Assembly (NCBI GenBank): GCA_965202585.1
Contig: OZ241826.1
Span: 70,804,001-70,868,000, forward strand
Reading direction: 5' to 3'
Source: Thalia democratica
Taxonomy: Eukaryota
Length of the DNA stretch: 64,000 nucleotides
Part shown: piece by piece, positions 5,539 through 34,775 of the stretch
How the letters are laid out: the number at the start of each line of letters is the position of its first letter
How positions within the stretch are numbered: position 1 is the first letter of the stretch
The notes under the pieces: model-generated
Told to the model about the DNA's origin: nothing
Databases searched by the model: none
Seen by the model: the letters and a program-made list of their open reading frames with translations, nothing else
Made by a program: the position numbers and the translations under genes

Positions 5539-8500
5539 ATGTCAATGAATAATGGATCAGAAATAGCTACCAATAGCACTGAAACTATGGCCAAGCTTAT
5601 AGCCCTTGAAAATAGAACTGGTTACAGTGAGTTTCTAACTTTATTTTGGTTTTTTAAGTAGTATGTAAAAATATATATAATCATTAAATTATTCGTTTGA
5701 TATAATTAAATAACATACATTAAACAACAGTTGAAACTTTATGTTAAAAGTGTAAAGTCTAATTACAATTGAAAATAAAATCATTGATAAGTTATCAAAC
5801 AAAATAGTGAATAAAATAAACTATTTTTTATTAAGGAATGCAACAATTTAATGGCCAACGTAAGTTTTGGAATCCAAATTGGGATAAATCCATCCCACCA
5901 AGAGGGTGTGAAGTTTTTGTGGGCAAAATCCCACGGGACTTGTATGAGGATGAATTAGTACCGGTTTTTGAAGAGGTTTAGTTTAGTTTTTACTTATTCT
6001 GTTCCACATCTTAAACAAATGCAATAAATTAATTTGATTTTGAGTATTCAAGCCTTAAAGGTTAATACTTTAATTTATAATATAGCTGCCCATATTTTTT
6101 TTGTAATTAAGGTTATACCCTTTTATAGATAGGACAAATTTATGAATTGCGCCTAATGATGGATTTCAGTGGTTACAACAGAGGATACGCGTTTGTGTGC
6201 TTCACATGCACTGATCATGCGAAAGCAGCTATTGAAAGACTGGACAACTATGAAATTCGTCCTGGTCTAAGAATTGGTGTTTGCAAGAGTGTTGACAATT
6301 GCAAGTATGATGTTGTGTAAATTTTTGTATGGTTATTATTTTTTAAGTTAAAATTTTTATATAATGTTGTCTGTAACATTCTGTAAAAATTTGAAATGTG
6401 TTATAACAAAGTTTCCAACAAGTACATTGAATAAGCTAATAATTTACAGGCTGTTTGTTAATGGACTTCCAAAAGACAAGTCACAGCAAGAGATTCAACA
6501 GGCTATGTCAGAAGTTTCTGAAGATGTCAGTGATGTTATAGTACATCCTGGAAGTAATCCAGGTAAGATTAATGTGTTTTACCATAGTTTTACTTAATGG
6601 TTTGGTGTTTGATTTATATCTTAAGTTTCTTAGGTTTAGTTTCTAGTATATTTAATTTTACAAAGTAAGCTTAAAATTGCAAAAATAAAAGCGTTATGGT
6701 TATACTTAAATTACATTCATAAACAAGTTATCTATAATAAGTTTTTATTTTGAGAAAAAGTAATGGTTATACTTTACATTTATAAACCAGTTTGCTATAA
6801 TTAGTTTTTTAATTTGAGAAAAAGAAGTTAAGCTCTATCTTCTTTGAGTCACATTAACTACATCTGTAATCTATTAAAACAGTAATGTAAGAAAAATAAT
6901 TTTATTTTCATGTATATACATATTTGCCCAGGTGAAAAAAATCGCGGATTTGCATTTGTTGAATATCAAACTCATCGTGCAGCAGCCATGGCCCGTAGGA
7001 AGTTAATGCCAGGTAGAATAACAATATTCGGCAGTGAGGTTGTTACTGACTGGGCTGAGCCTGAAACGGATGTTAGTTAAAATTACATTACATTGTTGAC
7101 TAAAAGTATTTTTACACTTTTAATAAAAAATCTTTTTTATTTTTAAGATTTAAAACTAAATTTATTTAGCATTTCTTATTGTTTTAAGCATGAAGTTGAC
7201 ACTTCATTATTATAGTAATTTGCAACTATTAAGTTTGAAAAAATTTTCATAGTATGTTTTATTTATTAAATATACAATAAAAATATATAAATAATTATTT
7301 ATTATCTAGATGAATGACACTTTAAGTCGCATAAAAAACGTTTATGTGCGTAACTTAAAGCTTACCACCACTGAATCAGCAATTTACTTTGCATTCAACG
7401 CTGTCCGGCCCAATGCAATTGAACGCGTGAAGAAAATTCAAGATCGAGATTATGCTTTTGTTCACTTTTTAAAGAGAGAAGACGCTTTGTTTGCCATTCA
7501 AGTTTGTATTTGGTTAAGTTTAATAGTAAAAATTTATAAAATATAATTTGTTGTTCGAAATATCGCATTACAACAAATCTAAATGCATTATTTAAATTTT
7601 CAGGCAATGAATGGCCAAAAAATTGACGGTCAGGAAGTTCAGGTCTCACTTGCAAAGCCTCCATCTAATAAAAACGATACACTCAACAGCATACTTCAAA
7701 ACTTTAGCATCCAAAAACAAACTGGTTAATTGATTAATTATTTTTAAAAATTTCTCATTTTAAAATAATTGTTTTGTAAAATTATGCCTAAAGAAATAAA
7801 GTTTGAATAGTTGAAACTTAATTAGCTAACTATACCTAGTTAAACTAGAAAATAATTGTAATTTCAATTACCAAAAACTTTTATTATGAACATTTTTAAG
7901 CTCAAAGATCATCTTACCCACCAATGGTTAATGCAGTAAACAATAACTCAATTGTCCAAGATCGCTTAAATTCACTGCTTCTTCATAACCCAAACAACAT
8001 TGTCAACCAACAACAGCATTTGCTAAACCAACTCACCAATAACTACCCTTTGATGCAGCCACAACAAGACTTATCAAATCCATTCAACAGAAATGTGAGT
8101 AACAAATTAGTTTTGTGTTTTGTATAAAGGAACTATTTAAATAAATTAAAGCAATTAATTTAAAATTCTTAACTAATTTAGAAAATAATTATTTATATGT
8201 CTAATAAGTTAAATATGTCCGTTTTTATTAATCTTAGACAAAATATTTACAAAACTTAGATTAAAATAAAGTATTTTTATGTAATGAATTTTTGACTAGA
8301 ATAACTGAGAAAAAATTATTGAAAATGATTTGATACAAACATATAACTAAATTTGTTAATTCTATAGCCACAAATTTCTGCATTGAGTTCATTGCAACTA
8401 CCCTCGCAAAGTCTTGCAAACGTTTACCAGCAGCAGATCAACCAGAAAGCAGCAGCCGCTGCCGCATTGAACCAACTGGCAAACCAGGCGCAGCTGGCAC

Positions 8501-8782
8501 AACTGCAAAATTATTCTCAGCTGCCCCAGCTGAACCGAAACTCGTTCGCGTCGCCCGTTCCATTTGCCCCTTCGATGAACAATTTGCAGCACGACCTAAT
8601 GGGCAATCCTCTACTTCAGTCGACTTCTCAAATGAACCACGCGTTGCTGAATCAAGTTACTGATAACTTGAGCCCATTGACTGCTCTTGAAAATCTCTCC
8701 AAAATACATGATCCAGTGGTTAGAACATATTAGATATTTACACAATGTTTTGATACAACTTAGAATTTTTTTTGTTAAAATT

Positions 8783-18242: not shown

Positions 18243-20479
18243 TTACAACAAGTAAGCTCTGATCACCACGAAGCTCAACAAAATATTCCTCAAGCTAGGG
18301 TCGAGGCTGCTAGCAAAGCTGCACGTCACACCGTCACCGGCGAAACCCGGCAAGCACTTGCAGGTGAACTCAGCATCGGCTGACCGCTCGCACTCGGCAT
18401 TTTCAGAGCATTCCAACCCGGCAAGCTGGCACTGGTGAGCATCTGTGCAAGCTGGCAGCTTGCATTCTACCACCCTCGAAAGTTCTTCCTTGCAGTCGCC
18501 CCTCGCGCACATTCTCGTTTCGGTTCTTTTTCCGGCGCCGCAAATTCCCACGCACTTGCCGAGTTTCCAGCCGGTGTAGGCAGGAGCATCTGTGTTCAAC
18601 TTCAAAGTTAATAAAAGAGCAAATAGTTTCACGCTCTAGAAATATTGAAAAAAAGACTGATTTTGTAGTTTTTACTTTTTTTAGTAAATCTGTTCCGTTA
18701 CATATAAATATCTTCGACTTATTATTTACAGGGTGTTTCGACTAATTAACAAAAAATATTAAACAATTGCAACCAAAAATCACCTAGTGAGTTTTTTTAA
18801 TAAATATTAGTTAAAACAACGGGTTTTGTTTATTGATAGTTGTTCACCTATGTTCACCGTATTTTTACGAAGTTTGTGGGTCTATTAGGTTTAGAAATTT
18901 AAGATAATAAAAAAAATTTGGACTATCTATGCTAAAATAAGTCAAAAAATACTGAAATAAGTAAATCATTTAGCTTATTAAACACATTTTAAATCTATAA
19001 AAAGTATTAAGAGAAAATCTTAAGTTTATGAATTTTTGCAGACTTTTTTTTCTATAAGGGTTTTTTAATTTCAATGCTAACAACCACTGACAATAAATGG
19101 AGTGTGTCAATGTTTTTAACGAATACAAAACATATTGTACACACTTAAAAGGGATAAATAACAAACTGACCACTAGAATTGTTGGCAACCGGAGCCGGCC
19201 CATCTTCAATCCTCGTGCAGTTTACGCCGTCCCCTTTATACTCGACCAAACAAACGCACTTGTGTTCACCATCACTCATCTCGCATGCGGCGTGCGGCGA
19301 ACAATGCAGAGACTTGCAAATGTCGTCGCCGGTCGGGCAAGGCTGCGACCTGCAAACCGCGATCCGGTGCAAGTCCTCGCTGCAGATCCCACCCAGACAC
19401 TCCCTCGTGTCCTGCCTGGTTCCTTCTCCGCACGTCACGCTGCAACTTCCGATCTTCCAGTCTCCGTACAAGCCCTTGGCGATGCACTTCATGTCGAGCT
19501 CGTCGAAATTTCCGTCTTTTCCGCACACGCTCATGTCCGAGCCGCTACGCTGCTCATACCCGTGCGAGCAGAACAAGCTGAAAATTTCCCCCACTTTGAA
19601 CTTGCCGCCGGGAGGTAAATTTTTCGTGTAGGTGTTGGGGGGCAGCTTTGGTAAGTCGCACTCCGTTATCGTCGTTTTGATCCAGTCCACGTAGAAGGAA
19701 ATCCGCGTCCACACTTCGGGCGTCGCCTGGTTGCCGCAACCGTCCAGCCCGAAGCTCACCACTCCCCTGAGAACGTCGACTCCCCTGCTGTCGTCGCGAC
19801 AGACCAGGGGACCGCCAGAGTCGCCGCGGCACACCCCGGTGGTAGCGTGAGGGTTGTTGGCGCAGATGTGCGAGTTCCTGATGTAGCTGCCGTAGGCGAA
19901 GAGGCAGTCGAACCGCTTCGACACGTACACAGTTCCCTCCTGAAGCGTACGGTCCGTGCTGTCGGCTTTCTCAGACTGGGTTTCCCCGAAGCCTGCGATC
20001 TCGCACGGCGTTCCCACCCCTGCCGTGTCACTGCTGCTCAGCGGTAGCGCCACCGGCTGGATAAACTTACTGGGTTTGAACTTATATTTGAGCTCTATAA
20101 CGACCAGATCGTTGTTGTTGGGATCATAGTCTGGATGCTCGTACTTGGCTCTGGCAATGATGTTCTGCTCGTAGTTGAGAAATCTGGACGTCGGGTACCC
20201 GGCGTATACGTGGATGTTGTTGGCCGGGTGGTCGACGGTGCAGTGCGTTGCCGAGGCAACCCACTTGTCCCCGATGACGACGCAGCCGCAAATGAAGACT
20301 TCCTTCTGCGACTTTATCACGGCCAACGAGCAGTAGAAGTTCCATTTCCCTGGCGCCGCGTCATTGCCGCCGTATATTCTGCCTTCCAAGGTTTTGGCGT
20401 CAGAGTTGTCGTTAGCAAGCGCCAGAAGACTTAAGTTGAAAATTAGCAGTCCTACAAGTTTGTATTTATTTTTGACCAT
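18243..20479 (-). CDS. Protease P1: secreted S1A serine protease, SP-Trypsin-CCP-TSP1-EGF-TSP1-EGF-putative GPI signal, 551 aa
   Basis: Exon 1 20479-19171 (donor AGT G|gtcagt), exon 2 18589-18243 (acceptor cacag|AT), phase-1 intron, 1656 nt. LEGR|IYGG, ATHC, NNDL, GDSGGP (triad intact). CCP CDLP...FC...VC...KC; TSP1 WKIGSCSVTCGEGTRQDTREC; EGF CSPHAAC...CVCLVEYKGDGVNC; tail SFASSLDPSLRNILLSFVVIRAYLL. Confidence 0.92.
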
Positions 20480-20483
20480 CGCC

Positions 20484-20528
20484 CGTATTATACTAAATCG
20501 TATTATACTAAATCGTATTATACTAAAT
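20484..20528. repeat. 15-bp tandem repeat x3 immediately upstream of the P1 start codon
   Basis: CGTATTATACTAAAT repeated three times exactly. Confidence 0.95.
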
Positions 20529-21386
20529 CGCTTTTAGTTTTATTAGATTTCAACGACTTAGCTTAAAAATTTCGTTACTTAGTAACAGAAAAACAACTTT
20601 ATATTTATGCATCAAGTCGTTTTAATAAATTAGGTGTAGATAAAAAGCAAGTTTTTATACTTGACGATTATTTTCATTCGATTTATTTTTAAGAAAATTG
20701 GGTAACTAAATTTCCCACTAAGTAGCAACAAGTTAAGCTTACAAGTTTATGATTTTACTAAAATATAACATTTATATATTTTTACTTTAATTTTTGTTAT
20801 ATTTTATGTTTTTGTAGTATTTTTTTATGTTTTATACAACTTTTAATGTGTTTTTTTAGAAAAAATAGTTTAAAGAAAAATCTTGTCAAATATTTTTCAA
20901 ATAAATTCCAAGCACATAGTTTCAAATACTAATAACAAAATTAATCTATATTATTTTCCTGGACAAGACGTTAAAAGATACCCGTGTAATTTAATAATGG
21001 TCGTTTTAAAGTTGGTTGAAAAACTGTATAATTAAACTTCATTGTATAACATAAGTATATTCTAAAACAGAAATAAATTTGTTCTTATTAATACTATTAT
21101 TGTTTTTTTTTTATTAAAAGCATAAATTTTATAGTATTTATCTTTATATTTTCTTTTATAAAAACAAATTGTACAGTAATCTTCCTTTATTGTACCAACA
21201 TATGTTTCTCTGTGTTAACGAATCAACACACTTCAACTGGGTTGTGAATGGAAAGAAATCTCTTTACCTATATTTTAAACCTATATTTTTGAACAGTTAT
21301 ATTTTCTTTTATAAATGTTAAGTTCATTTATTGTAGAATACACTTCTTTAAAACTCTTTAAAATGTTACAATAGTTTATTTATCTA

Positions 21387-21875
21387 TTCAAATGTAAGAA
21401 TATTTTTACTGTTTAAGTAAATTTATTAATAAAAATAAAAATTACCTTTTTAGCACAAATTACTGATAAAAATTTGAGTAAAAATATTTCAGCGTATTAC
21501 TTTCTTTAAAGAGGTTGTAACTTATAATTCGAGTATTCACACCTTTGCTATTAATATTGTTTATCTCCTTTTATAGCTTAATTAAAAGTTATATACATTT
21601 TTTAGTTCTTATGTTACTAAACAAGATTTATAGTACATTCTTAAACACGTTCAATTAATTTTAGTTTAGTTTTCTTTTCTTTTATTTCGTTTAATTGATT
21701 GTTTTATGACTAAAGATTTAAATACTTAAGTGATAAAAAAACTATGTGTAATAGCTCGTAAGTAACTTTATAAGCATGTGGTGTACGACTCGATAACCGA
21801 AAGGTTCCTTTGTACACCAGATCCTTAGACCAAACTTTTTGAGCGCTTTTTTTATCGTTCAACAAAACAATATTA
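21387..21875 (+). repeat. Dispersed repeat family D, right copy of the inverted pair
   Basis: Aligns by eye along its whole length to the reverse complement of 16616-17113. Shorter copies lie at about 59190-59320 (-) and 63125-63250 (+), with a fragment near 20957. Confidence 0.85.
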
Positions 21876-22195
21876 CATTTTTAGCTTTGGAGCAAAACAC
21901 TTTAAATTAAAAAAGTATAGTTGACATAATTGATTAACTAGATCAAATCTTTCATACATAAAAAAAAAATTGATTAAAAAAAGATTACAACTAAAAAGTT
22001 GTTAGATGATAGTTTAAAAGATAAAGTTAAAAAAAATTGCTACAACTTTGTTACGTGAATTATATAAAATAAATGAAAACAAAAACTTGATACCACACTA
22101 AATAATTTATTTTTTATAAGTTTATTATAGTTATTGTATTTAGCATTTGTAGAGTATTTAGCAGCTTTAAGCTTTTTTTATAGTCATTTTAGGCT

Positions 22196-23302
22196 TTACA
22201 AAACTTCATATGTAGACATACATTTAAGAGTAATGTAAACCACAGTTTGCAAAACTGCCATTCTTATTACCATTTCTAAAGAACAAGCCGCTGAAGATGT
22301 TTTAGGTGACTCATTTTTAGGCAACGTAGATTCAGTGACAGATTTTTTTGCATGAGTACTGGTAGTCTCAGAATTTTTAGCATGAGTGCTGGTAGTCTCA
22401 GAATTTTTAGTAGAGGTTGTTGTAGGTATTTCTGTTTTTTTAGTAACGGGGGTTTTAGACGCAGTAGAAGGATTTTTGGTACTTTCACCCTTCAAGTCAA
22501 CTGAAAATATGTTTTTTATCCATTCCTTGTACCAAGAGACTCTCGCAAAGACGTCCGCGACGTCAGTCAAGCCGCACTCGTCAGCGCCGAAGCTCGATAT
22601 CCCCCTCAACACGTACTGCTCCCGGGAAGCATCGTAGCAAGCCATCGGACCTCCGGAGTCTCCCAAGCAGATCCCGATCGGCGCGTTGGGCTCGTTGGCG
22701 CAAAGTTGCGAGTCTTCAACATCAGCAAAACTGTTAAAGCACTCTTCCTTGCTCACAATGTGCATCACCGCCTCCTGCTGATTTTTGTCTTCCGGCTCGT
22801 CAAAGTCCGTGTCACCGAACCCGATGACGTCACATTTCGATCCGACCGCGACGAGATCGTTTTTGCCCGTTGGCAGCAAGATGGGTTTGACCGAATCGTC
22901 GAACTTCAAACTTTCTTGCAGTTGGAGCAACACGATGTCGTGAATGAGCGTGTCGTCGTTGTACTGGGGGTGCTCGTACTTTTCTTGCGCTTTCACGCTC
23001 TGAGTGTAGCTCGATAATTTCGAGCTGGCGAACCCGGCGTCCACCGTGATTCCGCTGGCGGGCTCGCCGACAGTGCAATGGGATGCGGACAGGATCCAGT
23101 TTTCGGCAATTATTGAGCCTCCGCACACAAAGTAAGAGTCGTCAGTTTCTGATCCTTCAATGCTCAGATGAACGTAGAAAGGCCATTTACCCGGTGCCGC
23201 ATCGCTGCCTCCGTATATTCTGCCTTGAATGGAAACAGCGTGGGAACGTTTACACAGTTGAAAAGAAATTGAAACAAAAAGTAAGCATGTGAACAAACGC
23301 AT
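22196..23302 (-). CDS. Protease P2: intronless S1A serine protease with Thr/Ser/Lys-rich mucin-like stalk and C-terminal hydrophobic (GPI-like) tail, 368 aa
   Basis: Single ORF. Signal peptide, IQGR|IYGG, ASHC, IHDI, GDSGGP. T/S/K-rich stalk with KNSETTSTHA x2. Ends TSSAACSLEMVIRMAVLQTVVYITLKCMSTYEVL. Confidence 0.9.
   Translation of the reverse strand: MRLFTCLLFVSISFQLCKRSHAVSIQGRIYGGSDAAPGKWPFYVHLSIEGSETDDSYFVCGGSIIAENWILSASHCTVGEPASGITVDAGFASSKLSSYTQSVKAQEKYEHPQYNDDTLIHDIVLLQLQESLKFDDSVKPILLPTGKNDLVAVGSKCDVIGFGDTDFDEPEDKNQQEAVMHIVSKEECFNSFADVEDSQLCANEPNAPIGICLGDSGGPMACYDASREQYVLRGISSFGADECGLTDVADVFARVSWYKEWIKNIFSVDLKGESTKNPSTASKTPVTKKTEIPTTTSTKNSETTSTHAKNSETTSTHAKKSVTESTLPKNESPKTSSAACSLEMVIRMAVLQTVVYITLKCMSTYEVL
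22351..22410 (-). repeat. 30-bp coding tandem repeat x2 in the P2 stalk (KNSETTSTHA)
   Basis: Units 22351-22380 and 22381-22410 are 29/30 identical. Confidence 0.95.
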
Positions 23303-25074
23303 GCTTTTTTAAAAATTTTATTTTCCCTTTGTCTCTTATTTTGATAAAGCTAAGACTTATTTTTCCAAGCTGTTACTATGGAGTTATACTAAATTATTCT
23401 TAACAATATTGATAAACGAAAACATTATAATGTTATGCTAAAACATTATGCTAATTTACAGTAAAACGACGTATTTAGTTTTTATGCATTACTTGTTATT
23501 GGAGACTATTGAGTAATAATTACTACTTTCATGTTTTATATTTAACATTATTTTAATTGTGTTTTTATACTTAAAAATATCTTTTTTTACATTTCGTCTT
23601 TAATTAGCATAAGTAAAGAAATTAAAGTTTAATCTTTTCTTTTCGAATTTTTAGTTGTAAAATGCTTACTACTTAGAAAAACTTACATTTTTATATAATA
23701 CTTCAGTTTTGAAAACGTATACAAAATCAAACTTGCGCAAATAACAGTTTTATTTAAACTTTATTCTAATCATGCAAGAAAAATGTTACTAGAACTTAAT
23801 TTCTAAGAAGAATTAAATTAATGCTTTGTTTTTTATTTATCAGAAGTCTAAAAAATATTTTTGTCTTTAAAATATGTTTTTAAAAGCTTACAAACAAAAA
23901 CTTTACTTTGATAGTAGCAAAATTGGTCCATTAAAAAAAAATTCTCAATTTAAAGACAAGTACTAAACTTTTATCATAACAAAAATCACAAAAAACGAAA
24001 AATTTATAACAAAATATAGTTAGCTTTTCTAATACAAGTAAAAAACTCTAAACAACATTAAATTATACTCAGCAAACTCAAATTCATTATTCTTCAACAT
24101 CAGTCAGCAACAATCCTTATCTCCTACTATCTTTGTGTTTAAAATTTTCACAATATTTTACTGCTTTATGAGTAAAGCGCTTAATAAAATTCAATCTACG
24201 ATACACTTTTCAGCGTACAAAGTTGTATTTATTTCAAAAGTACTTTTAATTAAAGGCAGTGAACTAGTTCAAATGTTGTTGAGAACCAAAAACAGTGATA
24301 CCGCGTTCTATTAGCTTGTCTAAAAACCTAGATACCGTTAACAGACTGTCTGCTTCATCGCAGCGAAATTGGTTTTAGCTGCATAAAGTTATCCTTGTAG
24401 AACTTAACAAAAGAGCTCTTTAAAGTATCTATTACATTGATGATGTTTTTTGACTCACTCATAAACAAAACTATTTGAACACAAGATCAATTAATGAAGT
24501 ATATAATTCATGAGTATATTGAATTAATCAAGACTTATTCAGTAAATATCTTTTAAAAAACTTAGTCCAAAAACTTTATATTAAATTTACATAAGTAATG
24601 TATGAAAGTTATTGTATGTTGAAATTTATTTTGACGCGTTTTCAATAGAAATAAGTTAAACTGCTATACAGAGCTAGCAGTGTCAGCCAAACAGCCTGCT
24701 GTTCTAACTGCTTTACTTTACGAAAGAATCGATTTTTGAACATATCTTAAAATTCGTTACTTATTAAATACTATTACTGATACTATACACTGCAATACTT
24801 TACTAGATTTTGTTCTAATTAAAAAACAATGTGATAAATTTTAAACTTGTAATAAGTTTAGCAATAATGTATTATACATTTTTATTAACTAAGGTAATTT
24901 AAGACGTATCATTATTCTTCTTAAAATGAAAATATTTTATTATTTTATAATATCAGGTTCAAACTTATTATTTATCGTAATAACGTACACAGTTGCTAAG
25001 TAACAATAATTGAAATTTTAACACAAAGTTAAGTTTGATCGTTTTTAGGTTCATATTTTAACTTTCAGAAAAGC

Positions 25075-27935
25075 ATGCGTGATTTAAAATACAAAATTCT
25101 AGGACTGTTAATCCTGAGCTCCGGCCTTTTGGTCGCTGCAAACGAGAACTCAAAGAAGGACGACATCCAAGGAAGAATATACGGAGGCAGCGACGTGAGG
25201 CCAGGTGATTTCCCTTTTTTCGGCTCGTTGGCCATAAAAGACTTAAAGTCCATAAACGAAGTCAAAATGTGCGGTTGCACCATTCTCGGCAGAAAGTGGG
25301 TCGCCTCGGTCACTTCATGCACCAAAGACTATCCCGCTGAACAAATTTACGTGTACGCAGGGTATCCCACAACAACAATTACGAACTACAATCAGAACAT
25401 CAGAGCCAGAGCGAAGTACGAGCATCCCGACTACGAACCCAACCTCAACGACATCGTTCTCGTAGAGCTCAAAAAAGATTTGGTCTACAGCAACCTGGTG
25501 CTGCCCATCCAGTTGCCTCTGAACGACAGAGACGTGGCTCCCGTCAAAACCGAGTGCGCCATCATGGGATATGGAGAGACCGAGGACGACCCGATCACGA
25601 CGGTCCACAGGCCGATGAAGCAGGGAACCGTGTACGTCGTCCCGAAGGTGGACTGCCAGTTCACGTACGGCAACATCATCAAAGACTCGCACGTCTGCGC
25701 CAACCACCCGACCCAGATCACCGGAATCTGCAAGGGGGACGCCGGTTCGCCGCTGGCCTGCTTCGACGACTCCAAGCAGGACTGGGTGCTGAGAGGGGTG
25801 GCCAGCTTCGGAACTTCGGTGTGCGGCGTCGCCTCCGCCCCCGAGGTCTTCACGAGGATCTCGCAATACGTCAAGTGGATCAGGGAAAAGGTGATAGAGT
25901 GCAACCTGCCACCGAAGCTGCCTCCGAACGTCTTCACGAACGCGACGCACCACCACGAAGGAAACTTCAAGGTGGGCGAGAAGATCCAGCTGTTCTGCGA
26001 GGAAGGGTATGAACTGAAGAAGGGAGCAACCGAGTCAACGTGCCAGATGGGCGGCGTCTTCGACAAAATCGACACGGAATGTAGGAAAAAGTCCATATAC
26101 GGCGAGTGGAAGATCGGAGAGTGCAGCGTGACGTGCGGAGAAGGAACCAGGATGGACACGAGGGAGTGCCTGGAAGGGGTTTGCCCTAAACACCTGTACG
26201 TGGTTTCCCCCTGCTGGCTGAAGTCTTGCTCCGACGGCAACAACGTTTGCGAGGACCTCAAGTGCTCCCATTTTGCATCGTGCGAGAAGTTCTTCGACGA
26301 GGAAAACTTCAACTGTCACTGCATACCCGGGTTCATCGGCAACGGCAAAACTTGCACGAGGAAGCCTGTGGAAGAAGAAGAGGAACCGGAAACAGAAGGT
26401 GAGTGTAAAAGAAATTAATTTATTTAAATTGTAAAGAAGAGCTAATACCAGGAGTAATATTCTGGAATTTTTATTAAAAACCTAAAAAGAAACAAGTTTC
26501 AAGATCCATTTGCGTTAAAGTTATTAAAAAAATATTAAAATCGGTCATAACAAAGTTTAGGTAAGGCATCAAAAAAACCTGAAAAAGATTTACTTTATTT
26601 AATTAAACCGAAAAATATACTATGCTGCACAAACTGCATAGTGGTATATATTTATTATGTTATTATACAAACAAACTGTAAAAGGTTATTTGACAATGTT
26701 ATTTTATTAACAACTTTATTATACTACACACCGTTTAAAATAATTCTAAGTAAACTTAATAATTTTTTAATTAACAAAAGTATCCCAGTAAAACAAAATG
26801 ACAAGGTTAAATAAAACAAACCAAAATTCCGAGTTTCCAACAAGAAAGAATTTAACAATTTTTTTTTAATAAGTAAGTTTTTTCTTTTTACAACATAAAG
26901 CTTGTAATAGCTTGTAATAATTTTACTTAAAAACAGTATTTTTCAACAAGAAAATTTAATTAGAGTTCATTTGATTGCTCTTACTTAAAATGTACAGTCA
27001 TGTTTTAAAGTTAGACAATACTAAGATTGTGATAAAACGTAACTTGGTATACAAATAAAAGTATTGATTAGCTAGGCCTGTTTATGTTTTAATGCATAAA
27101 TGTAGATGGTAAAACAAAAATTAATAATAAAACTAACAAAAAAGTCCAATTAAATTAGTAATTAAAGTTTTGTAAGTTTTTAGGCGTAGGGATCAACCAG
27201 AACTATTGTTATTTAAAATTTGAAATTCCTTTTTTCTAAAAATTGTCAAAATGAATGGAAAATTTTACGAAAATAAATACTTGTAGTTGAATTATGTTCT
27301 CAATTATTTATTATGCTTTTGTACATGTTATACTTATTTTTTTATGTAGTTTTTACTTTTTACCTACAATAATTCATTATTAGTAATAAAACGATTAGTA
27401 TAGAAAAGAAAGCTAGAATAAGATATATTTAATCTAATATAAGGTTTTATCACAAAATGATTTATAATGAAATAAAAACAACTCGCATCTAAACTACAGC
27501 CTTACTTAAAAAAAAACTTTGTCTAAAGTAAACACCATTTTTCCAATCCTAAATCAATTTACTACACTTAAACTTTCAGAAGTACCCGTATACACGGACT
27601 GGACACTTGGCAGGTGCAGGGGCAGGTGCGGAACCGGAAAGAGAACGGACACTAGACAGTGCGTGAAAGGCAACTGCGTGGAGGCGATCTTCAGGCTGGT
27701 CGACTGCAGGCTGCCCAATCCGTGCCCGGAAAACAACCACGACGAGTGCAAGAAGCACTCACTGGACTGCCACAAGGAGGCCAGGTGCGTGAAGCTGGAG
27801 AAGGAGCTGAGTTTCGTGTGCGAGTGCGTTGACGGGTTTTTTGGCAACGGGAAAATTTGCGGTTTGAACGGCGGCCCGAAGCTTGGTGTGAACAAATTTG
27901 TGTTTGTTTTGGTGGCAGCTTACTTTTTGTTCTAA
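25075..27935 (+). CDS. Protease homolog P3 (catalytically inactive): SP-Trypsin(H57S,S195A)-CCP-TSP1-EGF-TSP1-EGF-putative GPI signal, 559 aa
   Basis: Exon 1 25075-26398 (GAA G|gtgagt), exon 2 27580-27935 (tttcag|AA), 1680 nt in frame. VTSC replaces AAHC, GDAGSP replaces GDSGGP, LNDI is retained. Tail CGLNGGPKLGVNKFVFVLVAAYFLF. Confidence 0.92.
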
Positions 27936-29033
27936 AAAATGCTGCGTCTGACTGGAGATGAAATATATAAAGAAATAAATAAAGCGTAATTAAAAAAAAC
28001 TATTTGGAATTTTTGTTCAAAACTTATATTAAGATTTAAAACATTCAAAAGAGATAAAAAAATTATCGTATTGAAGTTAATAAAAAAGTTCTAATAAAAG
28101 AAATTTTAAACCAAGGCTTAACTTTAAAGCAATATGAGTTTTATAACTTGATTAAAATTCAAAAATGAAGTTTTAAATTATTTCATAGACGCCAGAGGGC
28201 AAAAACGGTTACGGCTGATAATAAATAAAAAAACCAAAAACTTATGTGACTCAGAAACTTAGTTTTGTTAGTCTAACTGGTTACGTTTGTTATATATGTT
28301 ACCTATTTTTTTTAATACTAAAAAAGAAAAAAAAAAATTCAAGCTGTATTTGACTATTTTTACTGTAAACTACATATATTTAGTCTACCAAGTTTGGCAA
28401 AGGTTAAAAATACTAATATACTTAGAGTACACCTTAATCTAAAACATAGCTGTTGGTTAAATAATTTCATCAAAAAAGTTAAAGTTTAGAAAATTAGAAT
28501 ACATAATCTTCGTGATTCAGATAAAATAGCTTTGATTAAAAAGAATTAATTTAGCCAGAATTAAAAATGATTGAACATTTGTATTAATTCTATACTCTAC
28601 CCAAGTACTTAGTTTTGGTTTGAAAAACGATGACAAAGTGTGTTTAGCTTAACTTGATCACTTTTCTTCCTCATTATAATTTTTTAATGTGATTTATGTC
28701 TAAAAAAACAAACATTTTTTAATAACAATCGTTAAAGCAAACTCTTATCTAAATCTTAAATTTTAAGCTGTTATTTCTTTACATTAGAAATAGATACTTT
28801 GTGTTAAGAAAGATGGTACTAAAGTGCTATTATATATATTCTCTAAACTAAAGTCTACTTTAATTCTTGTTGTTCTATATGATTTTACAATCACAAAAAA
28901 AAAAAAGAAATAAATAAAAAAAACATATTCAATTCTATGTAATTTTTATAATTTGTTGCTAAGTATTACAAAGCTGTGTTGAAGAAAACAAGCTAGTAAA
29001 TTTTTTTTCAAAGTTACATGCCTAAAATTACAA

Positions 29034-31025
29034 ATGCATTTTTTCTTCTCCTTATGTTTGCTATCTCTGAACTTCAACACCTTCGCGCTTGCAAAAAAAA
29101 TCAATCTCACCGGAAGAATATTCAACGGGAAGGACGCGCCACCGGGAAAATGGCCTTTTTACAGCCTGCTGGTCATCAGGGCGGTCGAGGGCGCCGACGA
29201 AAGAAGTGCTTGCGGGTGCGTTGTCATCGCAACGAAGTGGATCGTGTCCGCGGCCCACTGCACCGTCGGCCACCCGGCTGACACTCTGTTCGTCCACGCA
29301 GGCTTCCCCACATCGATGATTCTGAATTACGAACAGAGATCGGGAGTGAAGGCAAAACACGAGCATCCGGAATTCAACTCCTTTTACGTTCTGAACGACA
29401 TCGTGCTGCTAGAACTGAAAAACGAATTAAAATATGGTCCTTTAGTGCGGCCGATTTCGCTGCCGGAGAACAAGGTTCCGAAGGTTTCCGAGGGAAAAGA
29501 GTGCAAGATCGTGGGTTTCGGCAAGACGGGAGGTGCGGAGACGCTGCAGGAAAGAAAGCTTCAGGAGGGAGACGTGACTGTCATATCCAAGTTCGACTGC
29601 CTGTTCGCCTACGGTCACATCATCAGGGACTCAAACATCTGTGCCAACCACCCGACCGCGGCCACCGGGTCGTGCAAAGGGGATTCGGGAGGACCGCTGG
29701 CCTGCCTCGATGACAGCAGAAACGAATATGTTCTCAGAGGAGTGACAAGCTTCGGTGCCACCCATTGCGGTGACAATACAACTCCGGAAGTTTGGTCGAG
29801 AGTTACTTGGTACCTGGATTGGATCAAAGAAAAAATGCGTGAAACTAATGGTTTGTATGTTTAACTTTAGTATGCTAGATCAGTTCAGGACTAAGACGCT
29901 TATTTTTGGTAGATAGTTTTATAGTTTTTAATTTATAAATGTTAATCTTTAAGATGTTTTCTTGAGTATAGAAGATTTAATTAAAAAATGAACTAGCAGT
30001 TTTGCTATAACTATTAAATAACTGTTGATAAAACAATATTTATGGTCTTTATAACTTATTTTATTTTTTTTTTGCAATGATCCCCGCTTGATCTAATTAA
30101 ACTGTTATTCTAGTATTAAGTATACTATAAAGTAAGTATTAAAATAAAAATTCACATTAGATGATGGAAAAAATTAACAAGATTTAAAAAATATGGAAAG
30201 TTATAGTTTTTGCTTTTTTATTTGTCGAAATGATTTAGTACAATTTAGCCTTTTTGTTAAGTCTTTGCACTCAAATTTATCTTTTTATTTTGAATTTTTT
30301 AATTATGTAAAAGTCTAGTTGGGTTTAATTTTGACTCTACTTTAAAGGAAATACTAAAAAACATTTTTTAGTCTAGCAGCAACCTACCTTAAAAACTATC
30401 CGTTTTAAAAACTTGAATAAGTTTTGTCTACTTATAGGAGTTAGTAATTTTAGTAAAAAGAAGCAGAGCTTTTAAAATCCACATGAGAACATAGTTTATT
30501 TACGAGCATATAAGTTCTGATCCATTGTTAAATTTTTCTTATTTAAAAAACAAAAGTTAGAGCAGTACAATTTTATTTTAAATGAAGAATTTTTCTCAAA
30601 TTTTTTCTTAAAACATATACAAACTTAAGCTAACAAAAGTAAGTTGAAATGTAAACAAAATATACTTTTTAGTTGATGGTTCATACACGGAATGGAGCCT
30701 GGGTAAATGTGATGGTGACTGCGGAACTGGATCAAGAACAGACATGAGAGAGTGCGTAGGAAAAAATTGCAATAAAGAACTTTCACGGACCGTCAATTGC
30801 ACTTTGCCGAACCCTTGCGAGCAAGGATGCAATAAGCTGAGCTTGGATTGTTCCAAGCATGCGAGTTGCATTAAATCGACAAAAAGTCTAGAATTTATTT
30901 GCGAGTGCTTAGATGGCTTTACTGGAAATGGTACCGTGTGTGTTTCTAACGGAAGTTTTAGAGTTAAAACGAATCTGGTAGTTTTTGGACTGGTAATTAC
31001 AATTAAAAGTTACCTTAAAGTTTAG
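29034..31025 (+). CDS. Protease P4: SP-Trypsin-TSP1-EGF-putative GPI signal, 389 aa
   Basis: Exon 1 29034-29850 (AAT G|gtttgt), exon 2 30673-31025 (tttag|TT GAT GGT TCA TAC ACG GAA TGG), 1170 nt. LTGR|IFNG, AAHC, LNDI, GDSGGP. Tail CVSNGSFRVKTNLVVFGLVITIKSYLKV. Start codon slightly uncertain (out-of-frame ATG at 29018). Confidence 0.9.
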
Positions 31026-31764
31026 AAACAGACAATTAGGTGCAAAGTTTATTAAAACAAGCGTACGTAGAATAAAAATAAATGAGGAAGAAAAAATATT
31101 TAATTATTAACTTGTATCTTTTTTTTATCTGAAAATTTAAAAGTTTAGCTACTCACAATTATTTTTGGTTTTGTTTATACTAAATGAAGTTTATATAATA
31201 TTCTAACAATCATTTTGTGCTAATTAAGATAAAACTAGCTAAGTATTAGAAAAAGTGAATGTTCCATTAAAAACTACCTTTTTGAAAAGTATTAGTTGTT
31301 ATATTCAATACACTTTTACGATATTTTTTGGTTAGATAGTTATAATAAGTTTGTAACTTTTTTCATAAGATAGATGATCAACAGAAGTTCTTAAAACTTT
31401 GTAATAAGTAAAATACGTTGTTAGTATTCATTTTCTTTTGTATAAGACTTAATAATGCTTTTGCTTATATATAGATATTTCAGCTTAATCTGTTTACCAT
31501 TTTATAATTATAAATTTGCATTCAAAAATTCAAAAAAACGAAGTTAGTTAATAAATTTTAATTAATTTTTAAAAGTTTTCTTTCCATTAACAACCCAGTT
31601 GAATTTGTTGATTCGTTAACACACAGAAACATATGTTGGTACAATAAAGGAAGATTACTGTATAATTGTTTTTATTAATAAATTTTAGTAGTTTTGTTGC
31701 TAAGTAGATTGATAAATGAAAATAAGGAACAAAATCGAACAAATATGTTTGACCGTCATACCAT

Positions 31765-34700
31765 ATGAAGTATTTTTCTAAAGCAGAGTTTGTAGGACTT
31801 TTGCTGCTTAGCGTAAGTTTTTTAACATTGGCAGACCAAAATTTGAAAATAGACCAAATCAAAGGCAAGATCTTTGGCGGGAAAAACGCAGAGCCGGGAA
31901 AATGGCCGTTTTATTCTTTCTTAGCCGTAAAATCATTTTCAAACCCGTTCTCAATATCTTCATGCGGCAGCGTCATTATCGGGAAAAAGTGGGTCGTTTC
32001 AGCGACACACTGCACGTTCGGTTCTCCCGCCAAGAACATTTACGTTTACGCGGGATATCCAACGTCAGAGTTTCTAAATTACGAGCAGAGTTCTGTCGCT
32101 CGAGCCAAGTACGAATACCCAAACTACAACGTCAGAACCGTTCGAAACGACATTGTTCTTGTTGAGCTGAAAAAAAACCTAGTGTTTAATGAGTTTGTTC
32201 AGGCCATAAAACTGCCTGAAAATAACGAACGAGTTCCAGCTGGCAGTGAGTGCGCTATCATTGGCTACGGAAAAACTGAAGAAGACATCTCAAAAAAGGA
32301 AAGAATTCTGAAAGTGGGACTTATTTATATTATCAGTCAAAGGCAGTGTTCTTCAATTTACGGCAACATTATTAGAGAATCCAACATCTGCGCCAACGAT
32401 CCGACTGCGTCAGTCGGAGCTTGCAAAGGAGACTCCGGCGGGCCTCTCGCTTGTTTTGACGAAGATAAAAACGAATATGTCCTCAGAGGAGTGACGAGCT
32501 TCGGAAGTCCAAACTGCGGCGACAGGGACACCCCGGAAGTGTGGACCAGGATAAGTTGGTACCTGGGTTGGATAAAACAACTGATGACAGAGTGCAACTT
32601 TCCCGCTGAGCTGCCCGTCAACTCTTACACCCTGTCGACGCAAACAAAGTTCAAAGTGGGCGAGGTATTGTCCGTTTTTTGCAAACCCGGCTTCATGCAG
32701 TCCGGAACCGCGCAGGTCGAGTGCCGGAAAAACGGATACTTTGACGAAATTGACACCAGATGCGTCGAGCAAGGGTTTTACGGCGACTGGAAGATCGGGA
32801 CGTGCAGCGTCACCTGCGCCACCGGAACCAGAATGGACGCTAGAGAGTGCGTGGCTGGAATTTGCGACGAGCCGCTTGTGAGGGTTTCCGCTTGCCGGCT
32901 GCAACCCTGCCCGGAAGGCGACGACGTTTGCGCTTCACTGAGCTGCTCGAAAAACGCGGTGTGCGAGAAAATTGGTAAGGTGTACGAGTGTGAGTGCCTG
33001 CCCGGTTTTATGGGAAATGGTTTTAGTTGCGCGAGTGAAGAGTTAGGGACTCTTGTTCGTTCAAACTTGAAAATTGGTTTGTAGTTTTATGTTCAATTTA
33101 TAAATTTTTGTTTACTTATTTATACCAAGGTTGCCTAAGGTAAAAAAAAAGAATTCCATGTTTTCTAAATTTCTTCAAAGTTTTAAAAAGTACAATTTTT
33201 TTTGTATATTTACTATAAATCTAAGTTTAAGGTGAAAACCGTCTTAAATAGTATAAAAATATTGAAAAAATACTGTAATGCAACTTTTAAAATGTTTTAC
33301 AATAAATAATTTTCTTAATGAAAAAAAAAATTTTTTGATACAATGATATATTTTTTGTATCTAATCAAAGTTTCCTCTTTTTGAAAATGTTAAAAATTCA
33401 AAGTTTTTTATTTATTATTATTTTTTCAAATTCCAAGTTTTTTAACCTAAACTGTCAAATTCTAGGTTTTTTGACGATCCTGTTATATAAAAGTTTTTCA
33501 ACTTTTATTAAAACTTAGCCATACAGTCATTTGTTTATTAAATAAAGTTTTCTTGTGATTGTCGAAAACCTTATTAAAGCAACAAATTTTTGAAATTAAT
33601 CTTTGAAATTTATGATTACATATAGAAATTAGTTTTTTAAGACATATTTTTTTAGTTTAAAACCGTATTATTGGTAGCTAATTTTTATGATCAACATTAA
33701 AATGTTACCTAGTTTTTGTTGAAAAGGTTTTCGAATTTCTTTTAATTTCGTTTATAATCAAATTTAGTGATCTACCGGATCCGGCCGGATTAAGCTTTTT
33801 TCACTACTATCTGGATCCTAATATAAAAAATAAATCCAAAACCAACCGGGTCTCGATTTAAAAAAATAGATCCGGATCTGATGTTGGCCGGATTTTGCGG
33901 ATCCTCCGGTAGATCACTAGCTTTTGCATTTGGTTTCAAAAAATATATTTGGATCCAGTTTTAAAAAAAGCAATAGTTATTTTTATTGTTCAAAAAATTT
34001 TTATAAAGAAGCAACCACACTAAATTTATAACAAAACGTTCCCTAACAAAACACAAGTAAACTATCGCGTTTAAAAAACATCACAGTATCAATACTTTAC
34101 AAAATTGTAATTGATGTATGTTGTAGGTGTAAAGAAGACTTTTTGTCTAATTTTTTCAACTATTTAAATGCAATAGTTGCCAAACGTTTGCTTCTCTAGT
34201 TTAAACAATTTTAGAAACTTAGTTTTGCTTTTAGTAAGTTATTGTACCTTGAGGTGCAAAATTTTATAAAATAATCAAGCAAAGTAATAGTTTAGAAAAC
34301 AGCTAAAGTAGGTATACAAATATAATAAATAACTATTCTTATTAACTTTATTAATAGATGTATTTTTAAGACTTTTCTGTATTTGTTTAATCTTTGTTTC
34401 AAACTATCAACTTAAATCTTTTGTATCACTTTTTCAGATGGTCCTTTCTATTCTGAGTGGAAACTTGGAAAATGTGAAGGAGTTTGCGGTGTCGGGCGTA
34501 GAAACGACACAAGAAAATGCGCAAGAGGCGACTGCAAAGAACAACTTGAGAGAACAACAAACTGCATTTTGCCCAATCAATGCGAAGATTGTGAAGACCT
34601 GAACTGCTCTGAAAACTCCAGATGTGCCAAAATTAGCCCTGAACTGCCGTATCAGTGTGTATGTTCGCCTGGTTTCTATGGAAACGGGACTGTTTGCAGC

Positions 34701-34775
34701 TCTGCAAACATCCTAATATGTGGCATGAAGCAGTACTTGATCATTATGATAATGGTGTTTTACTGCTACTTATAA
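31765..34775 (+). CDS. Protease P5: SP-Trypsin-CCP-TSP1-EGF-TSP1-EGF-putative GPI signal, 549 aa
   Basis: Exon 1 31765-33076 (ATT G|gtttgt), exon 2 34438-34775 (tttcag|AT GGT CCT TTC TAT TCT GAG TGG), 1650 nt. IKGK|IFGG, ATHC, RNDI, GDSGGP. Tail CSSANILICGMKQYLIIMIMVFYCYL. Confidence 0.92.
33765..33919. mobile_element. 155-bp MITE of the TAGTGAT (hAT-like) family in the P5 intron
   Basis: Perfect 15-bp TIR TAGTGATCTACCGGA / TCCGGTAGATCACTA and internal ATCCGG motifs as in 2863-4651. No TSD recognisable. Confidence 0.75.

Follow-up and report, generated by a model that had tools for sequence, protein, structure and literature searches.

Where does a chymotrypsin-fold protease devoid of Asp189 carry the charge of its S1 pocket, and which protease would activate it? 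Both questions are raised by a 64,000-nucleotide stretch of the genome of the pelagic tunicate Thalia democratica (GenBank assembly GCA_965202585.1, contig OZ241826.1, positions 70,804,001 to 70,868,000 of the forward strand), hereafter the window, in which five tandem paralogous genes, G1 to G5, probably encode secreted zymogens of this fold. The reading favoured here, with a probability of about 0.6, is that the products are a family of membrane-tethered zymogens in which the pocket charge lies at residue 226 instead of 189 and in which the S1 pocket has a broad or dual specificity. Indeed, all five match the Pfam family Trypsin (PF00089) with E-values of 1e-38 to 1e-49 and scores of 132-167 bits, for a gathering cut-off of 20.6, and four canonical disulfide cysteine pairs are invariant among them; the Cys191-Cys220 pair is present. 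The predicted domain order would be a signal peptide, a short propeptide, the protease, (Sushi)-TSP1-EGF-TSP1-EGF and a hydrophobic tail. Mean hydropathy over the last 20 residues is 1.1-1.4 in G1 to G4, with small residues before them, and the 549-aa product of G5 also ends in a hydrophobic stretch; tethering of all five by a glycosylphosphatidylinositol (GPI) anchor, of the kind carried by S1 proteases such as prostasin and testisin, is probable, judged from tail hydrophobicity.

The S1 pocket and its conservation

Landmark residues were read after the five proteins and 120 relatives from the database (P0001 to P0120) had been aligned by hmmsearch to the G1 protease domain. The family comprises G1 to G5 and P0001 to P0015, whereas P0016 to P0120, from the homology search, make up the outgroup. 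The strings that the original prediction gave for residues 188-191 (TGVC, IGIC, TGIC, TGSC and VGAC, from G1 to G5) are correct, with Gly189 throughout and Asp189 absent. Likewise, residues 214-216 read SFG in every copy and residues 225-230 read PEVWTR, ADVFAR, PEVFTR, PEVWSR and PEVWTR, which places Gly at 216 and an acid at 226 in all five. All therefore combine a small uncharged residue at 189 with Gly216 and an acidic 226, the triplet 189/216/226 being Gly-Gly-Glu in four of them and Gly-Gly-Asp in G2. Around this triplet, from G1 to G5, residue 190 is Val, Ile, Ile, Ser and Ala, residue 192 is Arg, Leu, Lys, Lys and Lys, and residue 228 is Trp, Phe, Phe, Trp and Trp. Gly216 is predicted to leave the pocket open in all five.

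The zymogen features Arg/Lys15-Ile16, Gly193 and Asp194 are found in all the copies, and the activation junctions had also been read correctly (LEGR-IYGG, IQGR-IYGG, IQGR-IYGG, LTGR-IFNG and IKGK-IFGG, the first four letters being P4-P1 and the next one Ile16). The catalytic triad His57/Asp102/Ser195 is found in G1, G2, G4 and G5, which, as far as their sequences tell, are intact enzymes. The claim of five enzymes holds for these four and fails for G3, which carries neither His57 nor Ser195; at most four of the five products can therefore cleave anything.

The numbering withstood comparison with solved structures. In HMMER alignments to plasma kallikrein, uPA, HGFA and proteinase 3 (PR3), the Glu or Asp sits opposite residue 226, in a stretch that is gap-free from Cys220 to Arg230. 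A model of the mature G5 domain, built from a 62-sequence alignment, has a mean predicted local distance difference test score of 95.4 and a predicted template modelling score of 0.92. Its residues 1-240 align to residues 16-243 of many solved S1A chains, with Z about 34 and a root mean square deviation of 1.5-2.2 Å over 223-233 residues. The top rows of this fold search, tied within Z 1, are Hypoderma collagenase, enteropeptidase, uPA and MASP-2, and the search singles out neither cathepsin G nor a collagenase. A model of the full-length G1 open reading frame (ORF) has low confidence in both the propeptide and the S1 loops (213-216 and 245-251), and was excluded from arguments about the pocket.

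Residues 189, 216 and 226 are a first guide to P1 specificity, with stated limits: the triplet is Asp-Gly-Gly in tryptases, Ser-Gly-Ala in chymases, Ala-Gly-Glu in cathepsin G and Gly-Ser-Asp in NSP4, and residue 226 may be shielded by its neighbours (PMC4646688). Human cathepsin G shares Glu226, Gly216 and a small uncharged residue 189 with the cluster and has a measured dual chymase/tryptase specificity (PMC5898719, PMC4646688); Lys is about half as good as Phe and Arg about 10-fold worse than Phe, in an enzyme that is slow overall (PMC5898719). Fiddler-crab collagenase, whose acid also lies at 226, accepts basic, acidic and hydrophobic residues at P1 (PMC7914634). The engineered rat trypsin D189G/G226D, changed relative to trypsin at the same two positions, keeps a basic specificity, now displaced in favour of Lys, and partial shielding of Asp226 by residues 190 and 228 is possible (PMC7914634). 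The relocated-acid pocket type proposed for the cluster is supported by its residues, as Gly189/Gly216/Glu(Asp)226 is of the type of these enzymes, all of which accept a basic P1 (PMC4646688, PMC5898719, PMC7914634).

By analogy with these measured enzymes, the active members would have a broad or dual P1 specificity, taking Lys and large aliphatic or aromatic residues, and Arg less well. The pockets are expected to be most open, and closest to that of cathepsin G, in G4 (Ser190) and G5 (Ala190), the best candidates for cleavage after Lys or Arg, whereas G1 (Val190) and G2 (Ile190) likely have a more hydrophobic preference. It is quite probable, from the same analogues, that at least some members measurably cleave after basic residues.

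Several points weigh against the favoured reading. The pocket triplet is an imperfect predictor: neutrophil elastase and PR3 (Gly-Val-Asp and Gly-Ile-Asp) carry Gly189 and Asp226, with Val or Ile at 190 as in G1 and G2, and yet are elastases (PMC4646688). In pockets of this elastase type, Val190 and Val216 keep Asp226 buried (PMC7914634); Val216 shields the acid and leads to a small-aliphatic specificity, whereas the cluster has Gly216 (PMC4646688, PMC7914634). Furthermore, the C-terminal half of G1 has PR3 among its best sequence matches in the PDB (GIC...PDFFTR in PR3, GVC...PEVWTR in G1). At residue 228, the cluster has Trp or Phe and the outgroup mostly Tyr (90 of 96 S1 proteins). Lastly, no close relative of G2 was found among the database matches, and this copy stands alone on a long branch of the maximum-likelihood tree.

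The pocket sets the family apart. An acid at 226 is carried by 17 of 19 family proteins and by none of 96 in the outgroup, in which the trypsin-type Asp189/Gly216/Gly226 predominates (73/96, versus 0/19 in the family). Gly189/Gly216/Glu226 occurs in 13 family proteins and Gly189/Gly216/Asp226 in one, each with an outgroup count of 0. As for the activation site, Gly-Arg/Lys at P2-P1 is found in 14 of 17 family proteins (outgroup 6/43) and the whole (I/L)xG(R/K) motif in 14 of 16 (outgroup 3/21), whereas P1 Arg or Lys is general (17/17 and 41/49, respectively). Going by these counts, the acid-226 pocket and Gly at P2 are signatures of the family and the basic P1 is a general S1A default that is not specific to the cluster. 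As the five genes are paralogues, their shared pocket counts as one inherited state kept over deep paralogy and not as five independent events.

The close relatives belong to Tara Oceans marine metagenome contigs (PRJEB4352) and to one JGI contig of 1383 nt, which crosses the exon junction without a break, as a spliced mRNA would. A word-index homology search, covering proteins of 0.55-1.75 times the query length, also yielded marine sequences only as close relatives. The maximum-likelihood tree contains well-supported orthogroups joining G1 with P0001 and P0002, G3 with P0005 and P0003, G4 with P0012, and G5 with P0006, P0010 and P0004/P0007. More distant members differ in the triplet 189/216/226 and at P4-P1: P0008 has Ser-Gly-Glu and ISGR, P0011 Gly-Lys-Asn and ISER, P0013 Asn-Gly-Thr and ITGR, P0014 Gly-Met-Asp and NDSR, and P0015 Gly-Val-Asp and xxER. 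The three pocket positions can therefore vary, and yet are held in the core clade.

This bears on whether the shared pocket and motif are mere leftovers of a recent duplication, free of functional constraint. The genes being tandem paralogues, descent from one ancestral state suffices to explain the identical residues. However, residues 189, 216 and 226 and P2/P1 have been kept although overall pairwise identity among the five has fallen to 33-50%, and relatives of the paralogues in other samples carry the same residues. Moreover, the ratio of non-synonymous to synonymous substitution rates is well below 1 (0.16 between G1 and the P0001 gene, 0.32 between G3 and the P0005 gene), and P0011 and P0013 demonstrate that the positions can change. 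An explanation by leftovers is consequently very improbable.

Activation of the zymogens and the inactive member

In G3, Ser replaces His57 (25315-25317) and Ala replaces Ser195 (25741-25743), while Asp102 is kept, as are Ile16, Gly193, Asp194, the IQGR site, Gly189, Gly216 and Glu226. Its relatives display the same losses (H57S and S195A in P0005, H57T and S195T in P0003). Judged from these substitutions, G3 is an old, selected and conserved pseudoprotease lineage, i.e. a protease homologue and not a peptidase. As this dead protein retains its activation site, cleavage at Arg15 would be carried out by something else and may well matter for function, as in cleavage-activated protease homologues.

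All five products, G3 included, would be made as zymogens that are cut between Arg/Lys15 and Ile16 within the conserved (I/L)xG(R/K) site. The conservation of this site points to one activator specificity of tryptic type, with a small P2 and an aliphatic P4. The idea of a common activator gains from the relatives found in other marine samples, in which P4-P1 is kept paralogue by paralogue (LEGR, LEGR and LGGR in the G1 orthogroup, three IQGR with G3, two LTGR with G4 and three IKGK with G5), the propeptide N-terminal to P4 being variable. A common tryptic activator thus appears to be the better-supported part of the activation proposal.

The activator may be sought within the cluster. The original prediction held that the members could cut the (I/L)xG(R/K) sites of one another, so that the cluster could auto-activate or cross-activate without any outside trypsin. 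In the version considered here, the active members would do so by means of Glu226 or Asp226 in a membrane-tethered cluster, and cleaved G3 would be a cofactor or a decoy. The basic P1 accepted by the acid-226 pockets of cathepsin G, crab collagenase and trypsin D189G/G226D speaks for this scheme (PMC5898719, PMC7914634), as does G2, which shares Asp226 with crab collagenase and has Gly at 189 and 216. The activation motif is kept in orthologues, even in the dead lineage, the G5 lineage retains a P1 Lys, the favourite of acid-226 pockets, and the hydrophobic tails of all members would co-localise them on one membrane. However, four of the five sites end in Arg, a residue after which cathepsin G is about 10-fold less efficient than after Phe (PMC5898719), and the preference of the trypsin mutant is displaced towards Lys (PMC7914634). 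Acid-226 enzymes have a low activity, and the Val190 of G1 and the Ile190 of G2 may shield the acid (PMC7914634). In addition, the cluster has no Asp189 member, its RNA was seen for G4 and G5 only, in a mixed marine sample (run X1), and a P1 Arg or Lys is what most S1A zymogens have anyway. A cascade closed upon itself is hence improbable.

As a basic P1 is the S1A default, an outside protease of trypsin type accounts for the sites just as readily. All five zymogens would be cut by a conventional trypsin-like protease with Asp189 whose gene lies elsewhere, such as a digestive enzyme or a membrane one, and the cluster would consist of downstream effectors of non-tryptic or broad specificity. 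In keeping with this, tblastn detected neither a sixth S1 copy nor an Asp189 protease in the window, and the preference of acid-226 enzymes for Lys over Arg mismatches the Arg-rich sites (PMC5898719, PMC7914634). The frequent Gly at P2, rare in the outgroup, argues instead for a selective activator, and an initiation from outside would also be compatible with later amplification inside the cluster. On balance, the chances of an external activator are slightly better than even. Cross-activation is chemically possible, but that some of it takes place within the cluster is a tentative and rather unlikely proposition. Of the activation proposal, the common activator is supported, whereas the self-contained cascade is not, and is weakened by the dead G3, the Arg sites, Val/Ile190 and the default nature of a basic P1.

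Gene structure and surroundings

The window contains five long ORFs, all located within 19145-33084, and no ORF of more than 130 aa elsewhere (Table 1). Taking these ORFs as complete genes was rejected, as P0007, P0008, P0011 and the RNA contigs reveal a 3' exon; the three proteins extend beyond the ORF ends by another TSP1-like/EGF pair and a hydrophobic tail. Indeed, tblastn with the tails of these three proteins locates 3' exons at about 18246-18596 (-), 27546-27935 (+), 30678-31025 (+) and 34425-34775 (+). The ORF ends of G1, G3, G4 and G5 are read-through into phase-1 introns, within which the stops lie; for G1 and G3, the splices are placed by analogy.

In G4, a marine metatranscriptome contig (run X1) joins 29477-29849 to 30672-31028, whereas genomic-type contigs (runs X3 and X5) retain the intron. 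Another X1 contig joins 32977-33074 to 34436-34770 in G5. The canonical GT-AG intron of this gene requires one differing letter at 33075, while an alternative non-canonical cut, 33074/34436, gives zero mismatches; both cuts lead to the same protein.

Table 1. Coordinates, in the window, of the five protease genes and of their parts
Feature	Position	Strand	Content	Basis
G1 ORF	19145-20479	-	includes read-through to 19145
G1 exon 1	19171..20479	-	signal peptide, propeptide LEGR, active-type S1A protease, Sushi, TSP1, EGF	donor inferred by analogy with G4 and G5
G1 residues	20375-20389 (P4-P1'); 20243-20245 (His); 20108-20110 (Asp); 19817-19819 (Ser); 19835-19837 (Gly189); 19715-19717 (Glu226)	-
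G1 intron	18590-19170	-	phase 1; in-frame join gives 551 aa	by analogy
G1 inferred exon 2	18243..18589	-	second TSP1-like module, EGF, hydrophobic GPI-signal-like tail	Pfam EGF_3; tblastn with tails of P0007, P0008 and P0011
G2 ORF, single exon	22196..23302	-	IQGR 23216-23230; Gly189 22673-22675; Ile190; Asp226 22553-22555; Ser/Thr-rich repeat stalk, hydrophobic tail; 368 aa
G3 ORF	25075-26418	+
G3 exon 1	25075..26398	+	pseudoprotease; IQGR 25165-25179; Glu226 25843-25845; then Sushi, TSP1, EGF
G3 inferred intron	26399-27579	+	phase 1; GTGAGT donor, CAG acceptor	by analogy
G3 inferred exon 2	27580..27935	+	TSP1-like module, EGF, hydrophobic tail; product 559 aa	Pfam, tblastn, inferred splice
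G4 ORF	29034-29864	+	protease domain alone, without Sushi module
G4 exon 1	29034..29850	+	LTGR 29106-29120; Gly189 29667-29669; Ser190; Glu226 29787-29789	end from spliced metatranscriptome contig and GT-AG
G4 intron	29851-30672	+	GT-AG	X1 contig
G4 exon 2	30673..31025	+	TSP1-like module, EGF, hydrophobic tail; product 389 aa	RNA contig, tblastn
G5 ORF	31765-33084	+
G5 exon 1	31765..33076	+	IKGK 31858-31872 (P1 Lys); Gly189 32416-32418; Ala190; Glu226 32536-32538; then Sushi, TSP1, EGF
G5 intron	33077-34437	+	canonical GT-AG	X1 contig, one differing letter
G5 exon 2	34438..34775	+	TSP1-like module, EGF, hydrophobic tail; product 549 aa	RNA contig; 71% identity to P0007 tail

Pfam detects Sushi and EGF_3 in G1, G3 and G5 and lists TSP_1 for G1 and G5; G3 aligns to the TSP1 module. 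G2 is the most divergent of the five copies. At 22196-22500 (-), a Ser/Thr-rich stalk stands in place of the Sushi/TSP1/EGF modules; the sequence NSETTSTHAK occurs in it twice, as a near-exact tandem repeat, and the hydrophobic tail follows. In G4, an N-glycosylation sequon, Asn-Leu-Thr, lies at P5-P3 (29103-29111, +); Asp stands there in its relative P0012, and the sequon is therefore not conserved. At about 1.3 kb, exon 1 of each gene is unusually long for a single exon, and long antisense ORFs occur in the protease coding regions, e.g. 25485-26312.

The window is AT-rich, with a G+C content of 23-31% outside the cluster (2-kb bins) and of 47-56% in the coding sequences of the five genes. 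Two stretches, about 31522-31715 (5' of G5) and 33074-33655 (in the G5 intron), reach summed contig depths of at least 10^5 in the genomic-type runs X3 and X5, with many loose ends; they are very high-copy repeats and probably small transposable elements. A Gln/Ala-rich ORF fragment at 8383-8733 (+) is probably an exon of an unrelated gene encoding a low-complexity protein, and no tRNA gene was found in the window.

Comparison with known protease systems

Cathepsin G is a single-domain granule protease that is activated by removal of a dipeptide and not at an Arg-Ile bond. By contrast, the cluster members have the Cys191-Cys220 pair and a site for tryptic activation, and they continue C-terminally into Sushi/TSP1/EGF modules and a putative membrane tail; site, modules and tail place them outside the granule-associated haematopoietic protease family. 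G3 has the same string, PEVFTR, as cathepsin G, and the other members have near-identical ones; the overall similarity of cathepsin G to the cluster is at the ordinary S1A level (E 1e-27). Gly189 is also present in fiddler-crab collagenase, so that the triplet of G2 (Gly189/Gly216/Asp226) would match its own exactly; unlike the modular cluster proteins, the crab enzyme is a single-domain digestive one from an arthropod. Insect proteins named collagenase or brachyurin-like among the matches have Ser or Thr at 226 and no acid. As for trypsin D189G/G226D, it is an artificial enzyme of reduced efficiency, with Ser190 and Tyr228 where the cluster has Val/Ile/Ser/Ala and Trp/Phe.

The network of the human KLK proteases is driven by tryptic Asp189 members, and KLKs are single-domain and soluble; the cluster, in contrast, has Gly189 in all five copies and no Asp189 member. 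Like the cluster, the KLK genes encode, in tandem, secreted S1A zymogens with propeptides ending in Arg or Lys, and their products form mutual activation networks (bioRxiv 10.1101/2021.04.15.439906; PMC3014083). The factor Xa motif, Ile-Glu/Asp-Gly-Arg, shares the aliphatic P4, the Gly at P2 and the Arg at P1 with the activation sites, LEGR of G1 included, whereas G5 departs from it by its P1 Lys; the likeness is one of substrate motif only. The literature searched yielded no tunicate protease described as combining TSP1 and Sushi modules with a GPI anchor and, for Gly189 together with Asp226, an unrelated enzyme only.

S1A zymogens with an acid at 226 are already known as a kind, and the cascade idea is itself ordinary in kind, as KLK, coagulation and clip-protease systems illustrate. 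There is a slim chance that the cluster forms a lineage-restricted, membrane-tethered zymogen network in this pelagic tunicate, with Gly189/Glu226 proteases activating one another and cleavage-activated G3 as a cofactor; it would be an independently evolved cascade, parallel to those of arthropod clip proteases and protease homologues or to vertebrate coagulation. If the pocket prediction is true, the cluster would represent a natural, conserved, multi-member family in which the S1 charge has moved from 189 to 226, and would take the acid-226 solution beyond its known settings, the immune proteases of vertebrates and the digestive enzymes of crustaceans. Two features are the most useful. Among the paralogues, the main difference lies at residue 190 (Val, Ile, Ser or Ala), which makes them a natural series on how this residue tunes an acid-226 pocket, while G3, which keeps both activation site and pocket, is a clean candidate for a cleavage-activated, substrate-binding pseudoprotease.

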